This document shows, piece after piece, positions 28,390 to 60,500 of a stretch of DNA of 64,000 nucleotides. The notes below the pieces were generated by a model, which was given only the letters and a program-made list of their open reading frames with translations, did no database searches and was not told the DNA's origin. Source of the DNA: Marsupella aquatica (lineage: Eukaryota; Plantae; Marchantiophyta); NCBI GenBank assembly GCA_973895155.1, contig OZ316899.1, positions 4,033,241-4,097,240 of the forward strand, read 5' to 3'. The first letter of the stretch is position 1. Each line of letters starts with the position of its first letter. A program made the translations under genes and the position numbers.

Positions 28390-31300
28390 TGTGAAGCCGC
28401 CGGTACGGCGAGTAATGAGTAATTCGGTCTAAACCGCGATTAGCACGTGCGTTAGGGGTATCTTAGGCCACTATTATTAGCATAACGACAGTATTTAGGT
28501 AACCATTATGAGTATGAAATTATTAGTCAAGAAGGGGAATTCATGTTTGGACTGGCGGCGTGTCGCCATTCGCACGCCCGGGTTGCAAGCGTGGAGGGGC
28601 CCCTCCCTCGGGTCCATATAATGAACTTAGGGAAGCGGCCACTGACACGCGCTGACTCAGACCGGCGGAGTGGCCGGTACACTACAAGCGTGAACGGCTC
28701 AGCCTATAAGCAACGAGGAGACGTCGGGTGATCGACGAGCCCTCAAGGTATAAAAGGGGAGCCGACCCTTTGTAGTGCACCAGTCCATCAGTCCACGCGC
28801 CACCTTTGACCCCAGCTCTCTCGTTTGCTCTTAGTCGCCATTGCTTTCTCCTCTGAATGTCGCACACGATCCTCTCCAGTTCGGCCATTCGATTCTAGAT
28901 GCAGTTCCTATCTACTGGAAGACACTTGGCCGACTCATTGAAAAATGCCAACCCGCGCCGATACAAAATCAAACGTGAGTACGAGAGAGCCATCCGCCTA
29001 GCAAGACGACACCACTATATCCTTAACTTTGACTACCCGTCTCAGAGCAAGCTTTACCGACCAGCAGAGGTATCAGGGTACTTCTTCAACGGAGACAAAT
29101 ATATCGGTTTTTGGGAAGCATTGCTTTGGCTTTCGGACGAGGTCTTCAATATCCCGGGTACGATCGACTTGCAACGGCATCACTTTGACCACATCCCTGC
29201 TTAGGTTTGTGCTATCATCAACAGCGAGTCCAACACTACCCGTTCGACAAGGCAGTCTGCACTTGCTTTGGAGAACTTCTACCAGCACATGCAGAGCTTC
29301 ATGGGAACTAGACCCTCAACCGCCGGCGCCGGCCCAGTCAACCCCATACCCGTATCCGCGCCAACGCAGGCTCAGGCTCAGCAAGCCTCAGTCTCAGCCT
29401 TAGCCTAGCCAACCCCCACCGCCGATTGCCCCGCCAGTACAAGTACGCTCCATCATCAACGCTATGGACCTTAGCAACAACGACGAGGCTACCCCACCCT
29501 TGCTCAGGCGGCCCAGAAGAGCGAACACTCAGGGGGCCGATACTACATCGTCCCCTCCCCATGTCCGGACCCAAGGAGCGGCTCCAGCAGACAACACGGT
29601 GACCATGGCCGCCCCGGGCCCAATACTAACGGCGGTAGCACTACCTATGCCCGATCGAGAGGATGGGGAGGTGTCACCCTCCCCGAGCCAGTCACGGGGG
29701 AAGAAGAGGAAGGAACCCGCTGCTGCATCCGGGTTACCAATGGCCACGGTAGCCGCGGCCAAGGTGACAATGCACTGCATGGGGAAAAACGTGCATAAAA
29801 ACATCCTCCATCCCAAACATGCGGTGTACCTGAAAACTCAGGGATTCGAGCACCTCGCCTCTCTCCCCTGGAACACTTGCAGATACTATGAGGAGGACAT
29901 GACGGAATTCGTCAAGAATTATGACGACGCACGTCAACATACTCGGCTGCGGGGAAGGAATATGTCCCTCACGGAAAAATGGCTCAAGATGATCTTTGGG
30001 TTACCCGAAGGTGACCACCGAGTCAAATCATGGGCTCCCGGGGGCAAGGGAGCCAAGTACCAATCCTTGAGTTTTCCCTCCAAGGGATCAGTGGACAACA
30101 GGTTTGTGATGAGGACCTGCCTCATCCCCGAGATAACTGAGCGACTGGAGTTCCAAAGGTACGCCCTCCACATGATGGAACCCCGGGGGAGATCTCCGCT
30201 GCTCAGGTTATCCAGGTCGAGAACTATCGACCTAGGAAGTGGGCATCGTACTTCGCTAAGAAATTCCATGAAGAGATGGAGCGGCAAAGAAAGACGCTTT
30301 ACATTGGCGGGAAGGCGTATTTTGCTAGCCACATCAAGATCATTCTCGAGTGGTACGCTCGGTTTGATCGACGAACCCTTCCCCGTGTCAACGTAACAAA
30401 GCTGGTCCCAGCTAGGTGGGTTTTCCCGGCCTTGGAGAGACGGCCCCAACCCGAGGCCCGAAGTCCAGCGGCCACGCAGGCTTCACCCACCCCACCTCCA
30501 CAAGTAGCTGTAGCCATGGCCGAGGAGGTACCGGATGGGTCGGTAATCCCAACCGTAGATGCGATCAACCAGGCCGGGCCAAGTACAGAAGTTGGGACAG
30601 CGGAGGCCTTACTCGAGCCCGGGTCTCCCGAAGACCCACCGGTGGCTATTCTGGAGGACCGGACATTGCTGGAGGAGGACACTCCAACCCCTTCCAACAC
30701 TACGTCTCCAAGGCTGGATGTCACTGCCCCAGCCCCCGCGCGTGTTGACGTCTGCCCGTGCCCAAATCCGGACAGGCACAACCTGGACCACCCGGAACTC
30801 TTCGTACCAGGTACATTTCTGAACGGGCTTCTGGGAGATTTCTCTCATCAAATTTCCCGGGATATCGGGGAGTTCATGGCCCGGAAGGTAGCCTGTTTCT
30901 TCAATCAGGAGTTGGTTGTCGTAGTAAAGGCAGGTCGGGCCCAGTCAGAGGCCCTTCAGAGGATAGAGCGGTACCGGGTGGAGTCCGTATACTTAAAGAA
31001 CAAAGTTGCGACTCAAGAGGCTGAGCTTCTGCAACTACAACCCAAAGTTGCAGCCGCGGATGAGTTGTTAGCAAAGGCGCACGCCCTTACCGCCCTAGCC
31101 GAACAGGCCAAAGCTGGGAACGAGGTTGAGATTGCACGACTCCGGAACCAGATTGACAGTTTGAAGAATCAAACTGTCATCTGGCAGAAAGACCTGGAGG
31201 AGGCCGAAGAGCGGGCCCAGCGGGACACTACAGAGATAGCCACACTACAGGCCAAAATAGCGCGGCTTCAAACTGAAGCCGAGAAGCAGGACCAGTTGGT

Positions 31301-31780
31301 GGGCAAGCTGACGAGCAACGCCCAGCAGCTGGAGGAGACAGCGGAGGAGACGGACGCGGCGAAGCGAGAGAACGAATCTCTGCTAGACCAGGTCCAGCTC
31401 CTCAAGGCAGACAACGACAGACTTTGTAAGCAGCGGGATGGCCGCTCCCACTCGGGCGGCTCTGGCAAGCGTGCCAGGTATTAGCGACGGAGTAGGAATA
31501 GAATAGGGTTAGGAATAGCTAAATCAGGCTATTGGGACAGGAACCTGCCCTAGTTAGAGCAGCACCGCCATGCTGTCCAGCCTGCGTAGGTTAGGATCTT
31601 CTAATAAGACACAGCCGTTTTTTGGCTTGACAGTCAGATTAGTTAGGACCTAAGTCAGCGAATCTTCGGGCAGGAGGACACTCTGTTCCTCGGCCCTTAG
31701 TATTTAGTGCACCCCTCGGTAGAGGCGGGGGGGGGGTTTTAGTCTCAGTGTTGGACATCCGCGGTATGTGCGGGGAGTCC
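28390..31780 (+). mobile_element. ORF-bearing unit, family F2, 3'-truncated copy
   Basis: Starts TGTGAAGCCGCCGGTACGGCG and is an inverted homolog of about 40025-43421. TATAAAA near 28749. Homology stops at about 31780. Confidence 0.85.
28857..31484 (+). pseudogene. Disrupted copy of the 878-aa F2 ORF
   Basis: Collinear with 40319-42955; several premature stops and at least one frameshift. Confidence 0.85.
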
Positions 31781-37011: not shown

Positions 37012-37275
37012 TAAATTTACAATTTCTTCTCAAAAACACTCTTCCCAATTCTAAAATTGAGACATCGAGGTATTGTTGTGTAACTCTTGCCCCACACTAC
37101 CTCCCCATCCACTTTCTTTCTTCCAAAATTGCATCCCAAACATTCATGCACTTTAGTGTCCAAAATGGAAATTGGCATAACTTTCTCTTAGAATGTCATT
37201 ATCATTATGGCCACGTCTTGTTGTGTATCCCTTGCTCTAGGCTACCTTCTTATCAACTTGTTAACACAAGACCAC

Positions 37276-37861
37276 TGTTGTGCAAATGCACATCGTCATA
37301 CAACATACATTGCTGGTCATGCCATACTCACATACATGCATAACATGGACAAGAGCATACACAAATACAAGATAGTGTACCGCAACTGAAATCCGTGAAA
37401 GACATACTGTCATAAAACACGTAAGAACACACACAGTCAAGCCAAACCCACTCCACAATGGAGAATCTAGGTCAAAGCTAACGGGACACCATAGCCAAGG
37501 AGCTCCACTCACTACCAAGGCTCTCCCAACGCCAAAGGCTCAGCTCAAAGAACTAACAGTCCTTTGAGCCTCTCCACACTATACCCTCCAACCCTGAGGG
37601 CGGGTCCTACTAGAGGAGTCACCCTCAACAGGGCACCCCCTCTAACCCTCTACCATGGAACCAGACTCCTAACTAGGCACTATGGCCCATCTAAGGTATG
37701 GACTCCGCTAGCACACTACATAGTCTAGTACGCTACGTATGGTCATGACAACTGTCGTGCGAATCCAGATTGTCATACAACATACATCGCTGGTCATGCC
37801 ATACTCACATACATGCATAACATGGACAAGAGCATACACAAATACAAGATAGTGTACCACA
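37276..37861 (-). repeat. 3' terminal repeat block X(109)-AC-L(364)-AC-X'(109)
   Basis: X 37276-37384, L 37387-37750, X' 37753-37861. Each runs TG...CA and X/X' differ at about 7 positions. Followed by AC and the PPT complement TTGCCCCCCT (37864-37873). Confidence 0.88.
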
Positions 37862-38034
37862 ACTTGCCCCCCTAACTGGTGGTTAGGTCCCTTCAACTCC
37901 CAGGTAGCCCTATCCATCTACTACATGCTATACACCTTTGTGGGTGCACGGATCAGAAGGTCGGGTGCTATGTTGCCCCATCATTAATCGCCCATCTGCA
38001 ATCCATACCATGTGAAGATCAAGTCATCCACCTC

Positions 38035-39422
38035 CTAAGTACACCGAGGACAAACCCACCGTCTAGTAGGCACAACATCAACAGGTGGAGTTAAGCATGA
38101 CATATGCCAACCCCTAGAACACCTATCACAAACCAACATTCGGGCTGCTTCACTAGCAGACCCACACAACATGCACCTCAAGCTAGTATCACTACCAAGC
38201 TGGGGTCCATTGTACCATCCACGTTTGGGAGGTGACATGGCGCACAATTACGCACATAGTCCTTCCAAACAACACCATCACAACCCTCCAACATGAGAAC
38301 TCCAGAAGCCAACACCTCTCTCACACGTAAGATAGTGCATCTTGCCGTCACATCCAACGTTGTCGGTGTAGTCTGCTGCAAATAGACATAGTCCCCCACA
38401 TGGAACCTACGAATGGATGGTCGATAACCTCCACCCCAGATGGTTGCATAACGCAACGTATCTCTGTGTTGAGCAATGGCAAGGTTCTCAAAGGCTGTTG
38501 GCATAACTTTCTAAAAGAGCTGTGCCCTTTGAGAACACACCCTCAACCACACCTCCGGGTCATCAAGGTTCACCACCTCACTAGAATCTCAACAAATTGC
38601 TGTGGGCAAGTCTGGGTCTTGGCCGTACAACAGAAAATAAGGTGAGGAGGAAGCCAAGGATGCTTGACGACTGAACCTATACCCCATGGCTAACCATGGC
38701 AACTGAATGTCCCAATCTCCAAGATACCCCTTCTGTAGGCCATACTTGCGCAATCCCCTCTTCATCGTCTGAACAACAAGCTCTGCCAAACCATCCGCCT
38801 CTGGATGATCTCGAGATGTGGTCCAGTGATCAATCAACGCCTTATCACACAAGACCTGAAACTCACCCTGAAACTCCGTACCCTGGTCGGTCAACATCTC
38901 CGCTGGTGCACCAAAATGACTAAGCACTCTATCAAGAAATGCATACGCTATTCCCTCACTTGCCTTGTCAGGCAATGCCACCAACTCAATCCACTTAGAA
39001 AAGTGCTCCACCATCACCAACACATACCGATGATGCCGCCTAGTTAACGGTAATGGTCCTGCAAAGTCCAAACTCCAACGGTAACCCAACCCCATAATAG
39101 GTAAGGGGTGTAACTGTGGTGTAGGGGCATTGAACGATGCCCTCACCCAATTGCAAACCATACAATGTGACACCAACTGTTTCACCTGAGTGTGGGCCTG
39201 AGTGTGCATGCCACACCACCAATATTGACCAAGAAGTAAGCTATACGTACGCTTTACTCCAAAATGTCCCAACTCCTCATGAGCATGTCGCACAATGCGC
39301 TCTCTCTGAGCTATATGGGGTACCACTCGTACTCTACCATCCTCCCACACACGGAGAACATGTGTTCCCTCCAATCGGTACCTCCTAGCACATTGGAGAA
39401 CACGGTCTCGCTCCTTGGCACT
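38035..39422 (-). pseudogene. gypsy DDE integrase followed by a C4HC3 PHD finger
   Basis: HEELGHFG...CMVC zinc motif, SLDFAGP, LTDQGTEF, HPEADGLAE. PHD: CMLC...CDRC...WHMSCL...WVCPRC. Confidence 0.92.
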
Positions 39423-42400
39423 TGTCACGTCGTAGGCTTCGGCCTTAACTCAGACTTGCTTAGACGGGCACATCCCTCGTAAATCTGAGGGTTCGGGCAG
39501 GAAGGGAAGCACGTAATGCACCTTATTCTTGTAAACTAGCGCTAAGTGCGCATACTGCTAAATACAAACACCTCCTAGGTATGGTTTGTGTTCCGCCGCC
39601 GGAACGTACCTTAGTCGATAGCAGGATCGACCCCGGCTTAAGGGCTTCTAAGCCTTCGTGCTGTCCGCCTTCGATCCGGATTCGATGATACAGGTCCTCA
39701 ACCCGTGCTCGCAACCACTTACCCGCAGGCTGCACCCTGTGCACATCTCGGGTAGTGCGTTCGGCCCGGCGCTGCCACCCATATACGAGAAACCCACACA
39801 CATATGCGCACACATGCATACAATCTCGATTTACACGAAGGAAAAATGATGGGAAAGGATTTTACTACAAAGGGAACATATGCGTACACTTAGTTGACAC
39901 GACAGCCCTGGAATGCACAGGTTCAAGGCCAAGGGTGCACACTACAACGGAGCCCGACTCCGCACTCGCCCGGCGAGCTTAGTCCTACCCCCTCCCCTTG
40001 GTACTCTGTCATTCCCAGAGGTCGGGACTCCCCGCATGTCCCGCGGATGTCCGACTCTGAAACTAAAAACCCCCCCTGCCTCTACCGAGGGGTGCACTAA
40101 ATACTAAGAGCCGAGGAACGGGGTGTCCTCACGCTGAAGATTTGCTGACTAAGGTCCTAACTAAGCTGACAGTCAGGCCGGAAAACGGCTGTGTCTTATT
40201 AGAAGATCCTAATTTACGCAGGCTGGACAGCAGGGCAGCGCTGCTGTACCTAAGGCAGGTGCCTGTCTCAAGAGCCTAACTAAGCCAATCCTAATCCTAA
40301 TCTATTCCTACTCTGCCGCTAATGCCTGGCACGCTTGCCAGAGCCGCCCGAATGGGAACGGCCATCCCGCTGCCTTCGAAGCCTGTCATTGTCCGCCTTG
40401 AGGAGCTGGACCTGGTCCAGCAGAGATTCGTTCTCTCGCCTCGCCGCGTCCGTCTCCTCTACTGCCTCCTGACATGCCTCCTCCAGCTGCTGGGCGTCGC
40501 TCGTCAGTTTACTCGCCAGCTGGTCCTGCTTCTTGGCCTCGGTTTGGAGCCGCGCCATCTCGGCCTGCAGCGTGGCTATCTCCGTCGCGTCCCGCTGGGC
40601 TCGCTCCTCGGCCTCCTCCAGGTCTTTCTGCCAGGTGACAGCTTGTTTCTTCAAACTGTCAATCTGGTTCCGGAGTCGTGTAATCTCGGCCTCGTTCCCA
40701 GCTTTGGCCTGTTCGGCTAGGGCGGTAAGAGCGTACGCCTTTGCTAACAACTCATCGGCGGCTGCAACCTTGGGTCGTAGTTGCAGAAGCTCAGCCTCTT
40801 GAGCCGCCACTTCGTTCTTTAGGTACACGGACTCCACCCGGTACCGCTCTATCCTCTGAAGGGCCTCCGACTGGGCCCGACCTGCCTTTACGGCGGCAAC
40901 CAACTCCTGATTGAAGAAACAGGCTACCTTCCGGGCCATGAACTCCCCGGTATCCCGGGCAATTTGATGAGAGAAATCTCCCAGAAGCTCGTTCAGAAAC
41001 GTACCCTGTACGAAGAGTTCCGGGTGGTCCAAGTTGTGCCTGTCCGGATTTGGGCACGGGCAGACATCAACACGCGCAGGGGCCGGGGCAGTGACGTCCA
41101 GCCCTGGGGACATAACGTTGGAAGGGGCTGGAGTGTCCTCCTGCAGCGATGTTCGGTTCTCCGGAATTGCCACCGGCGGGTCCTTGGGAGACCCGGGTTC
41201 GGGTAAGACCTCTGCCGTACCAACTTCTGTACTTAGCCCGGCTAGTTGGGTCGCATCAACGGTTGCGACGACCGACCCCTCCGACGCCTCCTCGGGTACG
41301 ATTACAACTATTTGTGGAGGTGGGGTGGGTGAAGCTGGCGTGTCCACTGGACTTCGGGCCTCGGGTTGGGGCCGTCTCTCCAATGCCGGAAAAACCCACC
41401 TAGCTGGGACCAGCTTTGTAACGTTGATGCGGGGAAGGGTTCGTCGATCAAACCGGGCGTACCACTCAAGAATGATTTCGATGTGGCTAGCGAAATACGC
41501 CTTCCCGCCAATGTACAGCGTCTTCCTTCGCAGCTCCATCTCTTCATGGAATTTCTTAGCGAAGTACGACGCCCATTTCCTAGGTCGATAGTTCTCGACC
41601 TGGATAACCTGGGCGGCGGAGATCTCCCCCCGGGGTTCCATCATGTGGAGAGCGTACCTCTGGAACTCCAGCCGCTCAGCTATCTCGGGCATGAGGCAGG
41701 TCCTCATCACGAACCCGTTGTCTACTGATCCCTCTGAGGGAAAACTTGAAGATTGGTACTTGGCCCCCTTGCCCCCGGGAGCCCGTGATTCGACTCGATG
41801 ATCACCTTCGGGTAACCCGAAGATCATCTTGAGCCGTTCTTCTGTGAGGGACATATTCCTTCCCCGCAGCCGAGTCTGTTGATGTACGTCGTCATAATTC
41901 TTGACGAATTCTGTCATGTCCTCCCCGTAGTACCTGCAAGTGTTCCAGGGGAGAGAGGCGAGGTGCTCAAATCCCTGAGTCTTCAGGTACACCGCATGCT
42001 TGGGATGGAGGATGTTGTTGTGAACGTTTTCCCCCATGCGATGCATCGTCACCTTGGCTACGGCTACCGTGGCCAACGGTAACCCGGATGCAGTGGCAGA
42101 TTCCTTCCTCTTCTTTCCCCGTGACTGACTCGGGGAAGGTGATACTTCCCCATCCTCCCGATCGGGCCTGGGGAGTGCCACTGCGGTTGGTAACGGGCCC
42201 GGGGCGGCCACGGTCACCATGTTGTCTGCTGGGGCCGCTCCTGGGGTCAGAGCAGGGGGTGGGGACGATATAGTGTCGGCCCCCCGCGCGCTTGTTCCTC
42301 TGGGCCGCCTGGTCAAGGGTGGGGTAGCCTCGTCGTCATCGCTAAGATCCACAGCGTTGATGACGGAGCGTACCTGTGCTGGCTGGGTGATAGGTGGTGG

Positions 42401-43421
42401 GGTTTGGCTAGGCTGCGGCTGAGGCTGAGGCTGAAGCTGAGGTTGCATGGGCACGGGTACGGGTACGGGCCCGGCTGAGTTGGTCATGTTGGTTGATGGC
42501 CGAGTTCCCATGAAGCTCTGCAGGTGCTGGTAGAAGTTCTCCGAAGCGAGTGCGGACGCCCTTGTCGAACGGTTGGTACTGGACTCCCCGTTAATGACAG
42601 CCCGAACCTGGGTAGGGATGTGGTCGAAGTGATGTCGCTGTAGGTCGATTGTACCCGGGATATTGAAGACCTCGTCCGGAAGCCGAAGCAATGCTTCCCA
42701 GAACCCGATATATTTGTCTCCGTTGAAGAAGTACCCAGATACCTCAGCTGGTCGGTAAAGCTCGCTCTGAGACGGGTAGTCAAAGTTAAGGACGTAGTGG
42801 TGTCGTCCTGCTAGGCGGATGGCTCTCTCGTATTCGCGTTCGATCTCGTATCGGCGCGGGTTGGCGTGTTTCAATGAATCGGCCAAGTGCCTTCCGGTAG
42901 ATAGGAACTGCGTCCAGAATCGAATGGCCGAGCTGGAGAGGATCGTGTGCGACATTCAGAGGAGATAGTAGTGGCGACCTAGAGAGAACGAGAGAGCTGG
43001 GGTCGAAGCTGGCGCGCGGACTGATGGACTGGTGCACTACAAAGGGTTGGCTCCCCTTTTATACTTTGAGGGCTTGTCGATCCCCGACGTCTCCTCGACG
43101 CCCATAGGTTGAACCACTCACGCTTGTGGTGTACCGGCCACTCCGCCGGTCTGAGTCAGCGTGCGTCAGTGGCCGCTTCCTTAAGTTCGTTATACGGACC
43201 CGAGGGAGGGGCCCCTCCACGCTCGTAACCCGGGTGTGCGAATAGCGACCCGCCGCCAGCCCGAACCTGAAGTCCCCCTTATTGCCTAATGATGTCCTAC
43301 CCCTAATGATTACCTAAATACTGTCGTTATGCTAATAATAGCGGCCTAAGACCCACCTAACGCGCGTGCCGAGCGCAGTTAGACTGAATCACTCATTAAC
43401 CGCCGTACCGGCGGCGTCACA
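39423..43421 (-). mobile_element. ORF-bearing TG...CA unit, family F2, complete copy (3999 bp), inserted in the RNase H-integrase linker
   Basis: TGTCACG...CGTCACA; perfect TSD GCACT (39418-39422 / 43422-43426). Removing it restores PGIVSAKERDRV. TATAAAA at 43057-43063. Confidence 0.93.
40319..42955 (-). CDS. 878-aa protein of unknown function (novel N-terminus, PQ-rich linker, retroelement accessory-type domain, coiled coil, basic NLS-like motifs)
   Basis: Uninterrupted ATG-to-stop ORF about 100 bp below a TATA box. Conserved in the decayed copies at 28857-31484 and 57030-64000. Confidence 0.8.
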   Translation of the reverse strand: MSHTILSSSAIRFWTQFLSTGRHLADSLKHANPRRYEIEREYERAIRLAGRHHYVLNFDYPSQSELYRPAEVSGYFFNGDKYIGFWEALLRLPDEVFNIPGTIDLQRHHFDHIPTQVRAVINGESSTNRSTRASALASENFYQHLQSFMGTRPSTNMTNSAGPVPVPVPMQPQLQPQPQPQPSQTPPPITQPAQVRSVINAVDLSDDDEATPPLTRRPRGTSARGADTISSPPPALTPGAAPADNMVTVAAPGPLPTAVALPRPDREDGEVSPSPSQSRGKKRKESATASGLPLATVAVAKVTMHRMGENVHNNILHPKHAVYLKTQGFEHLASLPWNTCRYYGEDMTEFVKNYDDVHQQTRLRGRNMSLTEERLKMIFGLPEGDHRVESRAPGGKGAKYQSSSFPSEGSVDNGFVMRTCLMPEIAERLEFQRYALHMMEPRGEISAAQVIQVENYRPRKWASYFAKKFHEEMELRRKTLYIGGKAYFASHIEIILEWYARFDRRTLPRINVTKLVPARWVFPALERRPQPEARSPVDTPASPTPPPQIVVIVPEEASEGSVVATVDATQLAGLSTEVGTAEVLPEPGSPKDPPVAIPENRTSLQEDTPAPSNVMSPGLDVTAPAPARVDVCPCPNPDRHNLDHPELFVQGTFLNELLGDFSHQIARDTGEFMARKVACFFNQELVAAVKAGRAQSEALQRIERYRVESVYLKNEVAAQEAELLQLRPKVAAADELLAKAYALTALAEQAKAGNEAEITRLRNQIDSLKKQAVTWQKDLEEAEERAQRDATEIATLQAEMARLQTEAKKQDQLASKLTSDAQQLEEACQEAVEETDAARRENESLLDQVQLLKADNDRLRRQRDGRSHSGGSGKRARH

Positions 43422-43487
43422 GCACTCACTATGCCTGGCACCCTACTGGTCCGTAGGAACTCTAACACCAACGCATCATCATGAATA

Positions 43488-45206
43488 TCATGTTGATCGA
43501 TCTGTAGCACCATCTCCAACCTCCGGATCTGCAGGCTGGCCATCTACCCTCTGACTAGAGGAAGGTGTAAGGTGATCCTCCATACTAGAGTTCACACCCA
43601 ACAAACACAAAAAGGCAGATGCATGCCATGCTGGCACCATCTCCTCATCAACCTCTCCATGCCATCTAGCTCCAGTATCATCCTCCTGACTAGGACATGG
43701 GTTCCTACTCAACCCATCAGCATCAAGGTTGGTAACTCCAGGTCTATGTACCACCTGAAAGTCATACTCCTGTAAGATAAGAGCCCACCGTGCAAGCTTT
43801 CCTGTAAGCTTATCAGCCTCCATCAACCACTTGAGCGGTTGGTGATCAGTAACAAGGGTAAACTCTATGCCAAACAATTAACACCTGAAGTGTGCCACAG
43901 CCCACACTGTTGCCAAGCACTCTCCCTCGTATGAACCATAGCTTGATTCTGTTGCATTGTTTGAACGACTTGCATAGGCCACCACAAACTCCTTGTTCTC
44001 ATCATCATGTTGTGTCAACACCGCTCCAATCCCCAACATACTCCAATCAGTGTGCAGTTGAAATGGGTGACCCCTGATAGGTCTCCTCAAGATAGGCGCA
44101 AACACCAACTTGGCCTTGAGCTCCATAAAAGCTCTCTCCTAGTCATCTCCCCACTGCCACTCCTGATCAGACTTCAACAACTTGTTCAAAGGCTTTGCTA
44201 TAGCACTAAATCCCTTCACATGTCGCCAAGAGTAGTTCGCCAATCCCATGAATGCCCGAACTCTACTCACATCTGTCGGCCGAGGGATACGTGCAATAGC
44301 CTCAACCTTTGCTTGTTGGACCCCCAAACCACTTGGGTAGATCACATGACCCAAGTACTCAACATCCTCATGGAAGAACCTACACTTTCCTGGATGTAAA
44401 CGTAGACCATGAGCTTTCAATCGCTCAAACACAATCTGCAAATGTTGCTGGTGCTCCTCCACAGTATCACTGAACGCCAAGATATCATCAATGTAACACT
44501 GAACAAAATCCAATCCTGCTAGGATCCTGTCCATCACTCTCTGAAACTCGGCAGGTGCATTCTTCAACCCAAAGGGTAAGAATCGCCACTGATACAAACA
44601 ATCCTTGCCATATGAGTTGACTCCCCAAAATGCTGTCTTGGCCTTGTCACTCACTCGAATTGGCAACTGATGGTATCCTGCCCGAAGATCCAAAGTACTG
44701 AAAATCCTTGCATTTCCCACCACATCAAAGATCTCCTCAGGTGTGGGCATGGCATACCTATCGGCCTTTGTCTGCCGATTGATAGGATGGTAATCTCCAC
44801 ACATTCGCCTCTCTGTGTAGTTGCCATGCACATCCTTTTTGATAGGCATGACAGTGGCTGACGCATACTCCCCATGCAACAACTCCACTAATCCAGCCTC
44901 CAAAAGGTCCAATTTCTTACTCCGAATCAAGTCCCTCTCCACATCACTATATCTGTAGGGACGACAAAAGATTGGCGTATCACTAGCCAAATCAATCCGT
45001 ATACCAGGTCCAACCAAAGCACCCAACTCCTTCATGCTAAAGGCAAAACAACTCCTATAAGCACGTAGGAATTGTGTCAACCGTCGTCGTTCACCTCCTG
45101 TCAGCTTGGGTCCAAGTGATGGCTCCCAAGTCTCCTCTACCAGTACACTAGAGGAAGAGGACGATGCCATTGGGTTGCTATGCCACCTCCTCACACGATG
45201 GCACAT
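43488..45206 (-). pseudogene. gypsy RT and RNase H
   Basis: RMCGDYHPIN, STLDLRAGYHQL, PFGLKNAPAEFQR, YIDDIL, LHTDWS, TDHQPLKWL, KLARWAL. Confidence 0.95.
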
Positions 45207-46473
45207 GCTCCTTTACACCATCATTTGAGCAAACAACTCCTCCACCAGCATGGGCCACCAACTCTACATGCCCATCCATCACATCCCATGTACGCCAAGG
45301 ATGCAAACTACCACTCTCCTCGCCCCCAGCCGATGCCTCTACCATCCCGGAAGGCAACAAGCTCATCACCAGGGGTGAAGTAACCACAGACATGGTCCTA
45401 AGTCTCCGCTGCTCGGCCATCGCAAGGTTCACAATCCATGTCAAACAGTTCAGGTCCATAGCCTGACCCAACACCTGGCGACGTGATGCCTCTGAAATTG
45501 AAGAGACTAATGTCACACCGGTAGGAAACCCCATAGCACGCTCTCTCTCATCAACGTTGGACTCCACCAACTGGCGCACATGAGAATCCCATACAAGCCT
45601 AGGACCACCATCCCTATAGGCATGTGATGAGGGAAAACTCACAAATGTAGGCAAAGCCATTCTAGGCTGCCCCACAAGGTTCACTATTGCCATGGGTGAC
45701 CTATCCACTGCTCTCGCCACCTGAGAATGTCGTCCACCATCCAAAATACTATCCATAGTGAGAGATAGAGGCCGCTGGATTGCATCATTGGCGCGCCTCA
45801 AAAGCTCCCTGGATAACAAGTTCGTCCACCACAACCATGGACGATGTGCACGTGAGCCCACCCTCGTTGCATCCAACAAAATAGCTGGCCCAATCCATGA
45901 CCGTACCTCATCTGCAGCCGTGATCACATGAGATCTAGTATCACCCAACAAAGGGACATTCTCCAGAATGTAAGCTGGAGCACGTGCCTGATGCACTTGA
46001 AGATGACACAACACCCACAACATCTCCCAAAACATATGAGAACGAGGGTCACGTAACCCTCCACCATGAGCAGCCCAAGTATGTCCCTGACATGGCCATC
46101 CAGCAATCACCAAATCAATAGGGCCAACCTTCTCAAGGTCTTGTGCCCCCAACAATGAAATGTCTGATGGCAAACTCCATTAATACCCCCAAATTGCGGA
46201 CTGTGACAACAACTCAGGGTATCTCTGCATCAACAATGCAAGATGTCGTGATGAAACCCTCCTCGCGGTCTCATCTCTCTCCACATACAAATACTTCCTC
46301 ACAGGTATCCCGGCCTGCAACACTGCAGCCAAACCCATGCTAATCCCACCAAAGAGGTCCAACACACAGATACCCTCTGGTGGATACTCCCCAAAAATGG
46401 GTGTTGTATCCAAAGGAGATAACCCCATTGGACCACCAGTAGGAGCTCGTCTTGGAGCCTCCTCTACCTCCAC
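45178..46473 (-). pseudogene. DNMT3-like C5 cytosine methyltransferase domain in the polyprotein
   Basis: Motif I VLDLFGGISMG, II YVERD, IV GPIDLVIAGWPCQG, VI YILENV, VIII AHRPWLWWTNL, IX ERERAMGFP, X RRQVLGQAM. One in-frame TAA (46180-46182). In frame with gag-PR across a TAG (46498-46500). Confidence 0.92.
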
Positions 46474-46497
46474 AAGTACAAAGGGTGTACTCCAAGC

Positions 46498-49213
46498 CTA
46501 TGATATCAAATGATCAGCCTTCTGCCTCAACACTCCACCTGAACTCCAAAGTGGAACATCCAAAAAGGAGGGTACCACTGCCGCCAAACTAAAGACCTCC
46601 TCTACCTCCTCATAGACTAGAGAATCCACGGCTAAGAGGTTACCCTCCAACAAATCCCCTGGCCAAGTGACCACTCCACTAAAACCAGCAACTGATGCCA
46701 ATACCTCTGGGGAAGTCCCTCCTGGTCTAACCCCAGAAATAAACCTCACAGGCACCTGGCTCAAATGTCCATCACCAGACTGCCAACCAGGTCTAAAGGC
46801 TGCTGTCTCAGTCCAATAGTCCATCTGAAAACCCATCGGGTACAACACTGCACCTCCAACTAGTACATCATACAACTCTGCTGATGTCACCACAGCAGTC
46901 ACTCCTAATGTAGAGCTATCACTCGCATGATCTGGCCTCATCTGCACTGACACCCTCTCTCGTGTCATGAAGTGAGACCTATCACTGGCTCCTCCAAGTG
47001 ATGTCTGAATCTGGAATGGGCATGGCTCCAACTCTGACCTCCGAATACCCAAACCAATACAAGCTGCCTTCCCCAACATCAAGGGTTGGGCACCAGAGTC
47101 CAACAACACCCTCTCTGGTCTATACACCTGTCCTGAAGGACTCACCAATTGAAAGACACCAGTCCGGTTGTTCAACATACATACTCCAGGTGTAAGCCTC
47201 TCACGATCAATGGCTGGTTGGGCTGGTAATGCATCCATCCTCGCCGCTGCCGCCTGCCAAGTAGCATCGGTACTTAATGCAACATCTGACACTAAGGGTT
47301 GCTCAACAACAACACCCTCACACGCCTCAGCACTTGTAGCAGCAACACTCCCACGTTCACACAACGTGCCAGCTAGCTGAAATACACAAGTCATGTCAAC
47401 TCTTGAGGCCATCAACTCAGTTGCGGAAAATAATGAGGATCCTAATACTGAGGTTGCCATCCGCAACACTGCACTAGAGGCTACATCTGTGTCTACTACA
47501 CGTGATGTAGATGCCCCTGTATCCACTATCGGCTCAATAGTTCTCATAGGAACCATGGATGGAGTCCTAAGCACCTCTGACAACAATAATGACTGAGGAA
47601 GCCTAGCCTGCCTCCCAGCCTCACCCCTCTGTGGGTCCAACTCCACAATGGCACCACGTGGCTCTGAAGCTCTAGTTGCACCTCTCATCAACGCAACTGA
47701 TGCCTCAACTTGTGCCGCACTTGCCATATAAGAGAGATCATCCCCCCCATAAGACGTGGAAGCCCCTGCTCCCGAACCTGCTCGAGGTGGAATACCAGCC
47801 ATAGTAGCAAGTCTCTGCTCCAACTGCTCAATCCTAGCCGCCATAGCAACCTCTATCATAGGGGGAGGGACAGCCACTATAGGCGCTCCAACTGCTGGTG
47901 GACCTCTACCACCCCTACCACCTCTACCAGCTCCACCACCTTGGCCTCTCTGAGGTGCTCCACCATGACCTCGACCACCCATCCTCAACTCTGGGTATAG
48001 GTCAAAACAACGGTCTCGAGGATGACTTGCTTGACCACAATGATCACACTGCACCTGGGCTGACTGAGATCCATCCTCTAAACTCCGTCCCGCACTCTCC
48101 TAGGGACAAACCCTCCGGACATGATCACCTCCACATGTCCAACACATTGGTCCTTGCTGTTGGGCAGCATATGAAGGCAACGGTCTCTACACACTCATCC
48201 CTCTGGAACCTGACTGAGGTTGTGCCAAACTTCCATGACTCCCACTACTACCACCACCACCACTACTACAAGACTGTAAAGTGGCTGGCTGAACTCGAGA
48301 AGTAGTGGCTGTATCCCTACTGAATGTAGATGTCACTACCCTCTCCTCCACCATGTTAAGCTCAATCTTCTCAGCCAAAGCAAACACACGGGACAACGTG
48401 GGTGGATCATCACTCATCAGAGTAGCACCATGTACCCTCCTCCACAACTCTCTGTCCAAAATCCCATACCAGAACTGGACAGCCTGTGCCTCAGTCACAC
48501 CCTGGGTAACTGAAATCAAACGCCGCATACGAGTGTATGCCTCACGAAGACTCTCACTAGTCTTTCTCTCAAACTCCTGGAGACTCCTCAACTTCTCTGT
48601 CTTCACCCCCTGGTAGTTCTTCTTCAACCTCTTGAAGAACTCTGTAACTAGGCTGAACGAAGGTGGAGCGCTAGTGCCTCCACTAGCACCTCCACTAGTG
48701 CCTCCACTAGTACCAACACCACCCTGAGTGATAGACACATAGACTGGAGACCAATGTTGTCTCCATGCCTCAATCTCAATAGCATGGTCCTTCTGGAACT
48801 CATGATAATCATCCATGGGAGGCCCCTCCAAGTGCTGAAACAACCCCTTCCATGCCAAGAAAGGTGTAAATAACGTGGTGTTACGCAACATCTGCATATC
48901 ACACCATGTATCAAACTCTTGAATGAAGTCCTCCAACTCATGGTGCCCACTGCCCTGAGTAACGTCGTGGGCCCTTCATGGCCCCGTACATCCCGTCCAT
49001 ATCCCAAATCAATGGGGCTGCTATACTGGACAATACAACTAAAGACTTGATGTCTGGAACACCCTCGTCCTCATCCTCATCAACTAACGGTAGTGGAAAA
49101 GGTAGCCGATACCTCAATCCACTCTGTGTAAAACCACCAGTGTCAGCACCAAGGTCCCCAACAGGACCACCAAACTGCTCCGTGATGACAAGCCGCAACA
49201 GCACCACCACCAA
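46498..49213 (-). pseudogene. gypsy gag, CCHC knuckle and aspartic protease (frameshifted)
   Basis: EDFIQEFDTWCDMQ gag, CDHCGQASHPRDRC knuckle, RGG-rich stretch, VLLDSGAQP protease. Confidence 0.85.
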
Positions 49214-50847
49214 ATCACCACCACTAATTAACCAAGTAACGTCGATGTCGCCGTACTACTCTAGCCCTAATAGCTACATGGGTGTGGGCAACCTAACCTG
49301 TCATCACCACAAGCAACCTCCCATGGTCTACTGGTCATTACTCCAGTCTCACCGTGAGAGAAACATAGGTAGTCTGACTGGTCATCACTCCAACCTCACT
49401 ACCGGCAGCACACTGGAGTAAAACTACTCCGGAAATCAGCGTCAACCCTAACAATGGGCGCGCAAGCAAGAAGCAGCAATGGAGGGGATCCAAACACATG
49501 AAGTCCAACGACAACCCTCCAATCGCAAATGAAATACAAAACGGAAATCAAGGTAACACAATCCACCAACCGTGACGCCCCTTGAATCCACAAAACAAAC
49601 CACACAATCCTAATGCAATGTAGCTACTCTGCTAGTAGTCTACGACGTGCTCCTCGCACTCCCAACATTTGATAATGTCACCTGCATGGAAACGCTATCC
49701 ACCACCATCCGCTAGGAATCCCAAAACGGGTCCTAACGCAACCTAAAACGATGCATATATGGGGGAAAACGTCCAAATATTACACCAATTCCTCTAAGGC
49801 AGTCTATACACTAGTAGAATTCAGAACTTGCCAGTTAAGCGTCTTGCAGGCAGAATAGTGCAAAGATGGGTGACCAGTTATGCAACACAATACTCACAGA
49901 ACTACTCACAAATCTGCAAAACTATCTCACACCCAAGCAAGCAAGCTTGCTTGCTTGCTCCTTTTCTCTGCCTCTCACGCCCACTCGCCCCGAGCTACCA
50001 CGAGTTGCCTCAAAGCCTCAAAATGCTTGAGACATGCCCCTTTCGCCCTGACTCGCTCCGCCACGCTACGCTACGCTACAAGCAAAGCGCCCCCAGCATG
50101 CAGGTTCGCTATCCACCATAGCCAGACCTTGAGCTAGTCCGCGAAATTTCAATCTCTGATTACTCCGTGAATCCTCGACGAAAAATGAATCTGTCTGGAC
50201 CAGAATTCAATTGGCCACCATAGCTATCTCTCCACAAGAAATCAACTACAACTGAGGTCTGTACTTCGAGCTAAAAATTGGACAACATTTTGGCCTATAC
50301 ATTTCCGAAGTTGCACAGCGCTTTCGCTCACAATCTATGAGCCACAACTAGGACAGCGCTTCCGCGCCATTGATCACACAACACAGATTTGCAACTCTGT
50401 CATCCAGATCTACTACCAATGCACTAAAATCCGGCAGCGCTTCTGCATAGATTCATCAATACAAAAATCTGCAACGGTCCCTCTCTAAACAACAATTTGC
50501 TCCACACACAGTTCTGCACGATTGAATTGATGTTGCAAATCAGACAATGATCAACATCAGAAACCTCTCACCCGATCTGGATGACTTCCAAACAGAGCTT
50601 CTGCACTCAAGCTTTCCAAATCTGAAAAACCGTCGAACACAAACCAGATTCTTCATTCTTTGATTACTTCCAACTCGCTCAACCAAACCAGACGATCTTT
50701 AGTGCGTTGGAAAGCTCTCAGCAACGTGCTTCTTCCCCACCCATACATGCACCAGATCCACAAACCACAATGTATCCACGGCTGATGCTATCAAACAGCC
50801 TACCAGATCCTACTGATCTCTAATCGAAGTTACAATCGATCACTACG

Positions 50848-50858
50848 AGTTCTTTGAG
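50848..50858 (-). promoter_or_regulatory. Candidate self-priming PBS (11 nt)
   Basis: Directly abuts L' and is the exact reverse complement of 51016-51026 inside L'. No tRNA-type TGG PBS is present. Confidence 0.6.
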
Positions 50859-51222
50859 TGAAATCCGTGAAAGACATACTGTCTTAAAACACGTAAGAAC
50901 ACACACAGTCAAGCCAAACCCACTCCGCAATGGAGAATCTAGGTCAAAGCTAATGGGACACCATAGCCAAGGAGCTCCACTCACTACCAAGGCTCTCCCA
51001 ACGCCAAAGGCTCAGCTCAAAGAACTAACCATCCTTTGAGCCTCACCACACTATACCCTCCAACCCTGAGGGCGGGTCCTACTAGAGGAGTCACCCTCAA
51101 TAGGGCACCCCCTCTAACCCTCTACCATGGAACCAGACTCCTAACTAGGCACTACGGCCCATCTAAGGTATGGACTCCGCTAGCACACTACATAGTCTAG
51201 CACGCTATATATGGTCATGACA
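50859..51222 (-). repeat. 5' terminal repeat L' (364 bp)
   Basis: About 11 differences from 37387-37750; TG...CA; lacks the X segment. Confidence 0.95.
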
Positions 51223-51850
51223 CCACCCTTCATAAGGTTTTGCCTTCCTCATTGAGATTCAACCCTCCAACTTTTCATCTCTAAATCCACGTTTTCTGGT
51301 CTGGTCTTGAAGCCCTTGACAACATGGTGTTCCCTATCTGATTTTCAGCCTAAGAAAACTTCTCTACATTTATCAATTTCTCACATCAAGAAAATTGTCC
51401 CAAAAACCGTCAAAAGTCCAATCTCTCCATGTTGACTTGACTTCCTTCCATTTCTCACCAAGAAAGTGACTCATCCATAAAACTCTCCAGTAGAACCTTC
51501 AAACTTCAGTCCACTAGAAGAAAGGAGCAATGGCTATTCTCTACACTCCCATCATCTTCTATTGTCCCTCTCCTAACTCCACATCAGACTCCAAAGCTCT
51601 CCATTCAATACACCTCACCAAAAATTTAGAGACCAACTCTATAATGAATCCTTCTCACAATTCATTAAACCCTAAACCCTTCCACTCCACAATACTCTTT
51701 CCACATCTTCTCTTAGAACTATGCATGCTTCTCCAAACTTTTATCTCAAAGCTCACCTCCTTGAAGCCCAACACTTGGCTGCCCCTCAACGGTAACCAAA
51801 TCAACAAATGCCACATTGCTTTTCCTAGGTGCCACATTGCCCCTCCTGGG

Positions 51851-56975: not shown

Positions 56976-57561
56976 CTTATCCTTACTACTAGCATTCCTA
57001 CCTAACTCTAGCTCTATTCTGAAACTACTTTGCCGCTAATGTCTGGCACGCTTGCTAGACCCACCCAAGCCAAACCCGGAATGTGCGTCCCAATTACTCC
57101 TCAGGTGGTTGGCATCCTACTCTAGTAGCAAGACCTGATCATTGAGGGATTCATTCTCCCTTTTGGCCGCGTCCATCTTCTCTGCAGCCTCTTGGCATGC
57201 TCTTCCAACTGCTGGGCGTTGCTCGTCAACTTGCCACTAGTTGGTCCTGGGTTGGGGCCTATTGTTGGACCCGCGCCACATTCACTTTTAGGGCATTGAC
57301 CTCCGTTGCATCTCTTTGGGCCCGAGCTTTGTCCTCCACCACGTCCTTTTGCTAGATTGGAGCTTGCCCCTTCAAGCTATTGATCTGTGCCCAGAGCCGT
57401 GCTATTTTTGCATCCTTACCCGCTTCGGCTTGCAAGGCTAGGGCCGTCTGGGCTTTGGCATTGGTGATCTGGCCTAGGGAGGTTGCTAACTGGGGCCAAA
57501 GGAGTTGTAACTTGGTCCCTTGGGCTGAGGCTTCATTTAATAGTTGGGTTGCCTCAACCTG
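56976..57561 (-). pseudogene. C-terminal part of a decayed F2-family ORF (host of the F1 copy)
   Basis: GCCGCTAATGTCTGGCACGCTTG matches the F2 ORF end at 40315-40340. QVEATQLL...INSLK is homologous to the F2 coiled coil. Confidence 0.75.
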
Positions 57562-60500
57562 TGTGGCGCGTTTTCCAAGACCTCTAACCCAAAGAACTAC
57601 CCTCAGTCGATCATAAACCACTCGCTTATGTCCGTCCTCTTGCCCTTTGGCAGCTATTCGGTTTGGAAACGCGATCCTCTCCTTTGATCCACACACCGGA
57701 CCAATTCTTTCACTGGGCTTGTGAATTGTGCACAACTGAGACACCTAATTCCTCTTTAACTTCTTCAGGTATATTTGTATTCCGCCCCCGGAATGTACCC
57801 TTACGGCTTAATTTCTTAAGCCGGCTGAAGGTCTTTTTCAGACTGACTCAACTCACACTTCACCGACTAAACACTCTCAATCCTCACTTTTCTCTCAAAG
57901 TTTGATTGGGCAGTCTCCAATCAAGACAATGCGATTGTATTTTGCTCAATAGTTCACCCTATCTGACTTAAATCAATCAAGCAACAGATATCATAACACT
58001 CAACTTCTTGGATGGCAAGAATCTGCAAACTATGCAACGAGGCCAACTCAATTCAAACAATTGCTCAGAAATCCAAGGGAACTGGTGGTTTACTGATACC
58101 CTGCGGTCTAGGTTTAGCCGAGAGCTTCCTGTGCTCACAACAATACAGATTTACACTAAAGCCTTGACTAAGAAAAAGCCCCTCGGGCCATGTTGCCCAG
58201 ATTTTTATCCTTGCAACGTGTTCAGGGAAATGGCGGAAATCCTAACCACAACTCACGACCTTCCACCGCGATAATCCTACTAAAAAACTATTACCTAAAA
58301 AACTTGACTAGCCCGGAACCCTGTGTGAACCGAGCATCTAATACTACCTAAGCCAACAGGGCGCTACTTGCCCTGTCCCATCCTACAACGGTCGCGCCCT
58401 TCTGGCCCAAGCCCTTCTCCTGCCGCCACGTCCTCCTTCCAACCGATGACTGGCCCTCCTTAATTGTCAGATGACCAGTGGTAAGTCCAAATTTTCCGAC
58501 TCTGCACCTTCTCCTGCCATCGGCTCCGGCTTGACCCCTTCGGCTTCCTCGACTTCGGGTTCTGGTTTGTCGGCCCCTGCATCGGCTGCTGCATTGGCAT
58601 CCTCCTGGGAAACGGCTTGGAGAGCTTTTGCCTTAACTTCCTCAATCCAAGCCTGCTCCCCGATGCGCTCGGTCTCAATAACCCACGGCTTCACGTTCTG
58701 GGCGTCCATAGAAGCAGTACCATCGTCTGAACCTGTTACCGCAGCTCCAAGTTGATCCGCAGTACTTACCTCTACTACAACTGCCTTCAGGGCCATAGTA
58801 CCACAAATGTGAGCGGCCATGCTCTCGACTTCCTCCGGAGTGGCTTTAAGGGGCTTAACTTTATTATCGCCTGGCCCCATGAACGTCTTTGCCAAATCTG
58901 CTACCAACTGCATGGCTTTGCCCCCAGTCACGCTTGACAACAGTGAGCTCGGCTTCGGCTTTGGCTTCACTGTATTTCCGCCTACCATACTACTGACGGG
59001 AAGCCTTTCAGTTGGTGACCCATATCCCGCTTTGGCATACTTCTTCAATTTCTCCGTTTGATTGTCGGCACGCTTCTGCAACCCGAGCATCTTATCCCTG
59101 GCCTCCTCCAATTCCTGAGATACGTCTTCAACTTCATTGTTAAGCCGTTGTATCTTGGACCTGGCCATCTTCAGCTCCTCATTTAAGATTTGCACGATCT
59201 CCAACTCTTGCTTATCTACGGCTGCTTTCAAGGAGTCATTGATGCCTTCCAGTTTTGTGACCTTGTCCGTCCATGCCTGCTTTGTCCTGGTTAGCTCCTC
59301 CTGAAGCTCCTTGCGTATCTGTTGGACCCGGTTTAGGTGATCATTGGCCGTTGTGCACATGGCGTCATCATGCTTCTCACGCATGGCCTCCAACCGGTTG
59401 AGTAACTTCTCATACTTCCTTTGGGCTTCTGCCAAGGCCTTCTCGCTCTGGGTGGCCTGATCCTTAGCCGTCGTTTTGAGCCTCTCGACCTGGTGATTTA
59501 GACCCTATACTTCTGCTTTTGAATCGGCTAACTCCAGCTCTACCTTCGTCAATTTTTCCTTGATTTGCTGGTTATCCAATTGGTTGTTCGCCACCTCCAA
59601 TTCCTGCTGCTTAGCCAAGAGATCCTGCTGAGTTGGTTGACCAGACTTCATCTTAGCAACTTTGGCTTCCATGGAGCGAAGCTGAGCAATTACCTCCTCT
59701 TTCTTTAACCGCTCCAACGTCATTGCCTCCTCCAGTCTCATTTGATCAGCCACTTCTTTTCTAAGAAATGGCCCGGATTCCAACTCGTTACCAAAGATTT
59801 CAAAGGCTAAGAGTCCACACATGTCTCCATACTCCTTAGCCCGATTTCTTGCGTAGTTTGACCTCCCAGGTGATACTAGCATTTGCCATCGAGGTCGTCT
59901 CTCCCAAGCCTCTGGCCGTAATTGATCAAAGTTAGTGAGAGGTTCAGCATGCCTCTCACTAAGCCATCTTATTTCTTCCGGCCACTCTCCTCCTAGTGGT
60001 TGGCATTCCTGTTCTACATTCCGGGCCCCCCACTCCTTAATCCTCTCTTGTAGCCCGGCTTCAGCTTCCTTCATCTTGTCAAATTCCAATGGCGTCACAT
60101 CTGGTGGAGGAGATTCTGGTGTTTCCTGGTCCTCCGGCTTGCCATAGAAGACTACGGGAAGTCTTCTACAAAACCTTCCCATCATTCTAACTCCTGGTAC
60201 CGGCCTCTCCCCGTGATTGACATAGTCATCATCGTAATCATCCAAATTAACCTGACTACCTAGCATGCTGGCCTCTCCTCCAAAGCCCCCGATCTCTTCC
60301 TCCGAATATTGTTGGGCTGCTACTGGTTGACTTTCCTCCACAGGTCCCTCCACTTGGGCTCTGTTAGAAGCTCTTAATACCGGCCTCTCCTGGCTTTGGC
60401 TTACCTCCTCATCTGTCTCCGAATCCATTCGCTCGTCATATTTCTTTCTCTCTTTGGCAGTCATCTTCCTTTCGACCAATTGGATGCCTGCATATGGATT

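Follow-up and report, generated by a model that had tools for sequence, protein, structure and literature searches.

A gypsy element with split terminal repeats

The DNA analyzed in this study, a stretch of 64,000 nt from Marsupella aquatica (contig OZ316899.1, positions 4,033,241 to 4,097,240; hereafter the window), contains a mutated, dead Ty3/gypsy long terminal repeat (LTR) retrotransposon, which is interrupted by a 4-kb nested insertion. The element proper lies at 37276-51222 on the minus strand (13,947 bp), and the interval 37272-51226 takes in both copies of its target-site duplication (TSD). In window coordinates and in the orientation of the element, namely the minus strand, the repeat units L (364 nt) and X (109 nt) follow the order L'(364)-internal-PPT-GT-X'(109)-GT-L(364)-GT-X(109), where PPT is the polypurine tract, with TG...CA ends and a GTGG TSD. 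An earlier sequence-only reading had reported these lengths, the three GT spacers, the TG...CA ends and the CCAC match of the flanks, all of which were correct when the window was read again.

Self-comparison of the window showed 97.0% identity between L' (50859-51222) and L (37387-37750) over 364 nt and 92.6% identity between X' (37744-37864) and X (37267-37387) in a 121-nt alignment, and no further copies of L or X in the window. The features of the repeats, including the primer binding site (PBS) and the LTR boundary set by reverse transcriptase (RT), are as follows.

51223-51226, minus strand: 5' TSD copy GTGG, matching 37272-37275 (CCAC on the plus strand)
50859-51222, minus strand: L', 5' long repeat unit, 364 nt, starting TGTCATGACC and ending TTTCA; 97.0% identical to L
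51051-51055, minus strand: TATA-like box, from sequence reading
51016-51026, minus strand: 11-mer AGTTCTTTGAG, complementary to the PBS and 29 nt 3' of the TATA-like box; predicted transcription start and self-primer, in an arrangement that recurs in seven lineages
50848-50858, minus strand: putative self-priming PBS CTCAAAGAACT, directly adjoining the CA end of L' and pairing with RNA bases 1-11 in the minimum free energy (MFE) fold
37864-37873, minus strand: polypurine tract AGGGGGGCAA, immediately 5' of GT-X'
37753-37863, minus strand: X', internal short repeat unit, GT plus 109 nt (37753-37861 without its GT), ending ACA; start of the RT-defined LTR (5' part of U3)
37747-37757, minus strand: X'-L joint CGACA-GT-TGTC, near-palindromic attachment (att)-like site, the only match in the window
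37387-37750, minus strand: L, 3' long repeat unit, holding promoter, self-primer, R and U5
37383-37391, minus strand: L-X joint TTTCA-GT-TG, the base immediately preceding the PBS, fused to the bases right after the PPT; putative head-to-tail cDNA joint
37276-37386, minus strand: X, terminal short repeat unit (109-nt part 37276-37384, ending ACA), whose end GCACAACA is the 3' end of the element
37272-37275, minus strand: 3' TSD copy GTGG, from sequence reading

A G-run is found at the PPT position just before X' in every lineage. As the PPT adjoins X' in all lineages and a self-priming PBS follows L', the LTR set by PPT and PBS is X+L, in agreement with the functional LTR proposed in the sequence-only reading. 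The conventional arrangement, in which two identical complete LTRs stand at the ends, was not found, since X is missing at the 5' end and the 3' L is followed by an additional X; the same is seen in all copies.

Pfam matches gave the domain order gag, protease (PR), DNMT3-like domain, RT, RNase H (RH), integrase (IN) and PHD finger, in minus-strand open reading frames (ORFs) broken by frameshifts and stops:

48187-48936, minus strand: gag remnant (weak Retrotrans_gag match; 76% identical to the gag of L001, a metagenome relative)
46498-48054, minus strand: gag C-terminus and aspartic protease ORF (weak Asp_protease matches; collinear with relatives)
45178-46473, minus strand: DNMT3-like C5 cytosine methyltransferase domain in two ORFs, 46180-46473 and 45178-46173 (PF00145, E=7e-7)
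44139-45206, minus strand: reverse transcriptase (RVT_1, E=1e-30)
43488-44126, minus strand: RNase H in two ORF pieces (domain matches)
39410-43420, minus strand: nested insertion of 4,011 bp with an 878-aa ORF (40319-42955), between RNase H and integrase
38178-39428, minus strand: DDE integrase (H2C2 zinc domain, rve core and C-terminal part), frameshifted
38035-38247, minus strand: PHD finger at the integrase C-terminus (PF00628, E=4e-12; present in relatives too)

The Ty3/gypsy pol order PR-RT-RNaseH-IN with a DDE (rve) integrase is present, and the added DNMT and PHD domains leave it unchanged. No Pfam match to a tyrosine recombinase (Phage_integrase) was obtained in the nine longest minus-strand ORFs or in element ORFs of at least 100 aa. 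The DDE integrase named in the sequence-only reading was confirmed by Integrase_H2C2 and rve matches at 38589-39428, whereas its description as an ordinary gypsy integrase is not quite accurate, as a PHD finger follows at the C-terminus, the pol also carries the DNMT3-like domain and the PBS is of the self-priming type. The solved structures closest to the DNMT3-like domain are DNMT3A and DNMT3B, and its motifs DLFGG, PCQ and ENV are legible. The PHD finger is kept in all relatives with an intact 3' pol and occupies the place that the chromodomain takes at the integrase C-terminus of chromoviruses.

Relatives and the census of X units

The RT ORF led to the relatives, whose contigs were then retrieved; their loci are numbered L001 onward. 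The searches yielded hosts in Calypogeia, Marchantia, Closterium, Scenedesmus, Monoraphidium and Cymbomonas, together with metagenome proteins, and the metagenome copies are about 80% identical to the window element. The layout L-int-X-L-X, where int is the internal region, was observed in every fetched relative with both ends available; about 12 further metagenome copies have it in addition to the following.

L001, metagenome: L-int-X-L-X, TSD TCAT
L003, metagenome: L-int-X-L-X, TSD CATA
L009, metagenome: L-int-X-L-X, TSD matching at 3/4 bases
L006, chromosome of the liverwort Calypogeia fissa: L-int-X-L-X, TSD ATGT
L008, Closterium sp. NIES-68: L-int-X-L-X, no clear TSD, 5' flank a microsatellite
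L136 (2469-17481), hifiasm-style long-read algal contig: TSD AGCT, repeats 99.6-99.8% identical, ORFs intact
L137 (6760-19251), Scenedesmus sp. PABB004: TSD CGGC, repeats 99.8-100% identical, 3,225-aa ORF

A DNMT domain is present in all relatives, a PHD finger wherever its region is present, and a DDE integrase in all copies. Judging from their sequences, the copies in L136 and L137 are apparently young and possibly active. These data indicate that the clade is found across green plants and that the layout is a family trait and not a one-off. The X-L-X block is present in the long-read contig L136 and in the chromosome-scale Calypogeia L006, which answers the concern about misassembly raised with the sequence-only reading. 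Three loci were uninformative: the Marchantia locus L007 is cut off after RNase H and lacks terminal repeats, and L014 and L015 (P0154) have neither terminal repeats nor palindrome within their contigs. The copy in L136 is situated in a satellite array.

For the census, the metagenome contigs were scanned with a 16-mer from X, which gave 49 loci of the liverwort-type family, and 70 X units, among which some loci are represented more than once, were classed by the sequence that precedes and follows them. X stood between PPT and L in 21/70, between L and flank in 29/70 and between PPT and flank in 12/70, and an unclear sequence preceded X and its flank in 8/70. A conventional 5' LTR (flank-X-L) was seen in 0/70 units, as was L-X-L. 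Together with the fact that no relative has X+L at both ends, this supports the earlier proposal that the layout is the normal integrated form of the family. After deduplication, about 16 copies of form A (L-int-X-L-X), about 10 of form B, which end in PPT-X-flank without the terminal L-X, and about 13 solo L-X copies were counted. Form A had been foreseen in the sequence-only reading, but the second common form had not. The solo L-X copies are the expected leftover of L'/L recombination in form A, whereas a conventional element would leave X-L, and the census contained no solo X-L.

Perfect 4-bp TSDs at the L start and X end were observed in 13 of the 22 informative copies, and 3/4 bases matched in four more (P ~2e-26, binomial, against 1/256). 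One 4-bp flank match alone, such as the GTGG of the window, is weak evidence, and the recurrence at the same boundaries in relatives, a check that the sequence-only reading had called for, gives it weight. The TG...CA termini and the short TSD agree with those of Ty3/gypsy elements.

A miniature copy was also observed: L132 (minus strand, 331-1067 in reverse-complement coordinates) is 737 bp long and consists of L, a 277-nt leader and X, flanked by AGGG as a perfect TSD. The breakpoint inside it falls on a GAGT microhomology with the PPT end.

Two joints, a predicted self-priming site and a possible route

The two joints between the repeat units behave differently. At the X'-L joint, the spacer in CA-NN-TG was always exactly 2 nt (16/16 independent copies), and the joint lies within an inverted repeat conserved from Scenedesmus to liverworts, which reads CGACA-GT-TGTC in the window and is perfect in Closterium and L013 (GACAGCTGTC). 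The spacer NN differs among sublineages (GC, AC, AT and GT), as expected of an inherited, templated sequence; the three identical GT spacers are peculiar to the window copy, as relatives have GC, AC or AT at the X'-L spacer. The two halves of the palindrome at this joint form the termini of the element, namely the L start TGTCATGAC and the complement of the X end TGTCGTGCG, the X-end half having been read from the X' copy at the joint, since the terminal X of the window has one substitution.

The L-X joint, in every lineage, consists of the sequence before the PBS and the sequence after the PPT. It was irregular in 8/28 independent copies, compared with 0/16 for the X'-L joint (Fisher P=0.036): PBS-derived insertions of 10, 14 and 16 nt (L059, L037 and L057), insertions of 20, 3 and 1 nt (L118, L047 and L114) and deletions of 18 and 26 nt (L130 and L112). 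The joint in L013 holds the complete 11-nt PBS. Such a pattern suggests that the L-X joint is made anew in each cycle by the joining of cDNA ends, like the junctions of retroviral 2-LTR circles. Outside the liverwort copies, the CA/TG of the RT-defined LTR tips are both missing in Closterium L008 and L013, and one of them is kept in L136 and L137, while the internal X-L palindrome is retained in all, including the copies with unconserved tips. Taken together, the irregular L-X joints, the unconserved tips and the fixed palindrome argue that the functional integrase att sites apparently lie at X-L, inside the RT-defined LTR, and not at its tips.

At Closterium L008:13552-13563, the L end and the X start share about 12 nt, so that L-X there is an overlap and not a blunt fusion; this may be the footprint of a template switch. 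A further side observation concerns L027 (element on the minus strand, X at 481-593), whose 5' end retains no more of L than its final 11 nt (TGTCATTTTCA), followed by the PBS, and whose 3' end is PPT-X. It has a perfect ATGT TSD, and its left end coincides with a cryptic TGTCAT located 11 nt upstream of the PBS, which suggests that integrase could cut far from a DNA end through a cryptic att-like site; alternatively, the structure may have arisen by a later microhomology deletion.

Concerning priming, the PBS 11-mer CTCAAAGAACT and the 11-mer AGTTCTTTGAG within L are exactly complementary. In seven lineages, the PBS and primer are perfect complements of 11-13 nt with unrelated or compensating, i.e., covarying, sequences, such as CTCATTCTTTGAA / TTCAAAGAATGAG in Calypogeia and ACTCTGTTTGT / ACAAACAGAGT in Closterium, and the pairs of L013 and L136 differ by one compensatory pair. 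The primer lies 29-33 nt downstream of the TATA box where this is recognizable. In the predicted MFE fold of the 5' RNA, bases 1-11 pair with the PBS, and the energy of the whole fold is unremarkable (z=-1.4). A tRNA-type PBS was rejected, as the PBS starts with CTC and not TGG. The covariation points to a PBS of the Tf1 self-priming type, adjacent to U5; in plants, such priming has so far been predicted for the Tcn1 and TAR lineages (PMC6317226).

We propose the following replication route. RNA would run from the start site in L' to the 3' L, and self-primed reverse transcription would yield X-L-internal-X-L. The end of L would then be joined to the start of X, so that the cDNA termini meet head to tail, in the simplest form as a 2-LTR circle, after which integrase would cut the PBS-proximal X-L site and insert the DNA with a 4-bp stagger, giving L-internal-X-L-X. 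The DNA ends used by integrase would sit back-to-back at the internal near-palindrome ...CGACA-NN-TGTC..., not at the LTR tips, and the layout would be self-perpetuating, as the integrated form would transcribe everything needed to rebuild X+L. Precedents for the cutting step exist in retroviruses: 2-LTR circle junctions are cut in vivo by the integrase of foamy virus (PMC1180852), that of HIV-1 cleaves the palindromic LTR-LTR junction in vitro (PMC1905944), and unintegrated HIV-1 DNA can re-enter integration (PMC4372172). A scheme by reverse transcription only, with an RNA ending in the terminal X, was rejected, since no path of priming and strand transfer copies the terminal X and the irregular L-X joints oppose templating.

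A gypsy clade with internal att sites and end-joined cDNA, integrated in the permuted form L-int-X-L-X, is probably the best explanation as a whole, and in its core, an internal att together with head-to-tail joined cDNA termini, we have fairly high confidence. The closed 2-LTR circle specifically, which had been the proposal of the sequence-only reading, is a tentative and somewhat doubtful form of it. The topology fits, since the layout is a cyclic permutation of X-L-int-X-L opened at the PBS-proximal X-L, and so does an L-X joint with PBS inserts and deletions. A closed 2-LTR circle has two identical X-L sites, and the mirror product L-X-L-int-X is therefore expected as often as L-int-X-L-X; this prediction failed, with 0 mirror copies against about 16 of form A (P=3e-5), although fast loss of L-X-L through L/L recombination may be another way to explain its absence.

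Apart from the missing mirror product, several other points weigh against the proposed route. About 10 loci end in PPT-X-flank, and this form B needs 1-LTR circles, or cutting of both internal sites on one DNA, or later X'/X recombination. The Closterium copy L008, with its microsatellite 5' flank, lacks a clear TSD. The route is read from integrated copies, from which we infer the RNA ends, the extrachromosomal DNA, joining before cutting, the closed circle, the activity of the integrase and the enzyme that would join the termini. A self-closing contig, L013:1-16102 (ENA ERZ1793633 NODE_1090; 55-nt overlap), reads X-L-internal-X-L-(X) with the L-to-X joint at its closure and has intact ORFs of 1,274 and 2,087 aa; it could stem from an extrachromosomal circle or be no more than a path taken by the assembler, and it was rejected as direct evidence of a circle because an assembler gives the same path from integrated L-int-X-L-X copies.

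The missing mirror product would be accounted for by a linear route without a circle, in which the internal X-L sites are cut on a linear cDNA extended at its right end by a further X(-L), arising from end-to-end template switching by RT or from a joined strong-stop X-L-PBS by-product. Cutting at its sites J1, J2 and J3 would give L-int-X (J1+J2), L-int-X-L-X (J1+J3) and solo L-X (J2+J3) and never L-X-L-int-X, which is exactly the set of three forms seen and the absence of L-X-L. The PBS-containing joints of L037, L057 and L059 are all in solo L-X copies with TSDs, as this route would have it, but solo and full copies do not differ significantly in their PBS inserts (P=0.08); the nucleotides common to the Closterium L end and X start would favor a template switch. 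The solo L-X and X-flank forms are, however, equally explained by L'/L and X'/X recombination after insertion, and we know of no precedent for regular extension of the right end only. We regard the linear route as rather unlikely.

A route like that of the DIRS order is very improbable. Here, a sub-genomic RNA would be restored to full length via the internal X'-L block as a bridging template and the circle inserted by site-specific recombination. The split direct repeats of Ngaro and PAT-like elements follow the very order found here, A1-internal-B1-A2-B2 (PMC8969392, PMC7192593); for both, this layout implies that the ends of the replication product meet at a B-A joint. The same comparison has been made in a published figure legend on a gypsy element (PMC5890265). 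In contrast, the DIRS elements encode a tyrosine recombinase and lack TSDs (PMC8969392), whereas the present family shares the split repeats but has a DDE integrase in all copies, no tyrosine-recombinase domain in element ORFs of at least 100 aa, and the DDE signatures of TG...CA ends and 4-bp TSDs; its A2-B2 joint (L-X) is an irregular end-to-end joint and not a templated one.

We give hardly any credence to a conventional element whose LTR is L alone, with X' as a 3' untranslated region and the terminal X as a local duplication or rearrangement after insertion. L does start with TG, end with CA and hold the promoter. In all lineages, however, it is X' and not L that the PPT adjoins, and the end of X' that precedes L contains no purine-rich tract. 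Every insertion, from chlorophytes to liverworts, would also need to have undergone the same rearrangement. The TSDs, which in 13 copies lie at L start and X end and not at L start and L end, already refute this reading. An assembly artefact or one-off permuted insertion in the window, for which only the general risk of repeat misassembly speaks, is negligible. It is refuted by assemblies that are independent of one another, a chromosome-scale genome and a long-read contig among them, in which the layout recurs and each time has other flanks and another TSD.

Returning to end-joined cDNA, a broader proposition, which we stop just short of endorsing, is that the clade is ancient and still active, that its att sites moved from the LTR tips to the internal palindrome, and that each integration passes through an end-joined cDNA (2-LTR circle or concatemer).

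Known systems, wider meaning and other insertions

Several findings in the literature can be compared with these data. In Klebsormidium nitens, de Mendoza et al. (2018, Nat Commun, PMC5890265) described KnitGypsy-Dnmt3, a gypsy element with a Dnmt3 domain in its pol, and according to the figure legend its repeats follow the arrangement of a DIRS element, whereas its domains are those of Gypsy. The paper gives neither TSDs, att site, PBS type nor mechanism. The window element, with a Dnmt3-type domain in a gypsy pol, DIRS-like repeats and gypsy domains, matches the KnitGypsy-Dnmt3 kind by its published description; the hosts differ, being here liverwort-like plants (window, Calypogeia and Marchantia), Closterium and chlorophytes. 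The layout, called possibly undescribed in the sequence-only reading, had thus already appeared in 2018, and beyond that legend neither a mechanism nor the layout in gypsy elements was found in our literature search, outside which subscription-only papers lay. New here are the breadth across Viridiplantae, the 4-bp TSDs, the conserved internal att-like palindrome, the irregular and apparently de novo L-X joint, the self-priming type of PBS and the product spectrum, including the missing mirror form.

The retroviral 2-LTR circles (PMC1180852, PMC1905944, PMC4372172) resemble the present family in a joint of U5 end and U3 start with occasional PBS-derived inserts or deletions and, as far as the sequences suggest for this family, in a DDE integrase able to cut a CA...TG palindrome away from a DNA end. 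They differ in that the retroviral palindrome is the circle junction itself, so that cutting regenerates the normal linear genome, whereas the palindrome here lies 110-230 bp inside the LTR, leading to a permuted provirus, and the equivalent of the junction, L-X, is kept in the genome. Tf1/sushi elements and the plant Tcn1 (Neumann et al. 2019, PMC6317226) share a PBS that is complementary to their own RNA at its predicted 5' end; compared by features, they have conventional LTRs and chromodomains, whereas this clade has split repeats, a PHD finger and DNMT.

In the textbook view of LTR retrotransposition, the integrase sites are at the tips of linear cDNA, and end-joined circles are waste or a retroviral dead end. 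The integrated architecture reported here would make sense only if cDNA ends are joined and integrase cuts the internal palindrome. If this is true, the family would be a natural DDE-integrase retroelement dependent on an LTR-LTR-joined form and a living intermediate relating the split direct repeats of DIRS/Ngaro to ordinary LTRs, thereby offering a bridge from LTR elements to the unexplained split repeats of tyrosine-recombinase retroelements. With young intact copies in Scenedesmus and in a long-read algal contig, it may be a tractable natural system for the old question of joined or circular cDNA as an integration substrate. In annotation, LTR finders built on the assumption that both terminal repeats are identical would shift the boundaries by one X unit and misclassify solo L-X copies.

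The DNMT3-like enzyme and the PHD finger mean that the clade bears on the interaction between transposons and host chromatin. The DNMT domain lies between protease and RT in the window, Calypogeia, Marchantia and Closterium copies, whereas in the chlorophyte relatives (L013/P0180) it lies between RNase H and IN, which suggests a rearrangement or two separate acquisitions.

The 4,011-bp insertion is not present in L001 or L003, and its ORF878 had no match in L001, L003, L006, L007, L008 or L009. A second copy occurs at 28391-31780 of the window (88% identity), and more diverged copies occur at about 57000-63900 and at 3398-4039. As the insertion is missing from the relatives and repeated in the window, it is a later nested insertion outside the family, and ORF878 was rejected as a gene captured by the element. 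A word-index protein search gave no homologue of ORF878, and Pfam returned only coiled-coil noise, the C-terminus being coiled-coil. The repeat of about 4 kb that carries it is unclassified and has no terminal repeats.

The region is repeat-rich and holds other retroelements, namely a Ty1/copia-type gag-pol (Retrotran_gag_2, RVT_2) at 9305-13632 on the plus strand and, at 24437-27070 on the plus strand, an RT ORF whose zf-RVT domain is characteristic of non-LTR elements.

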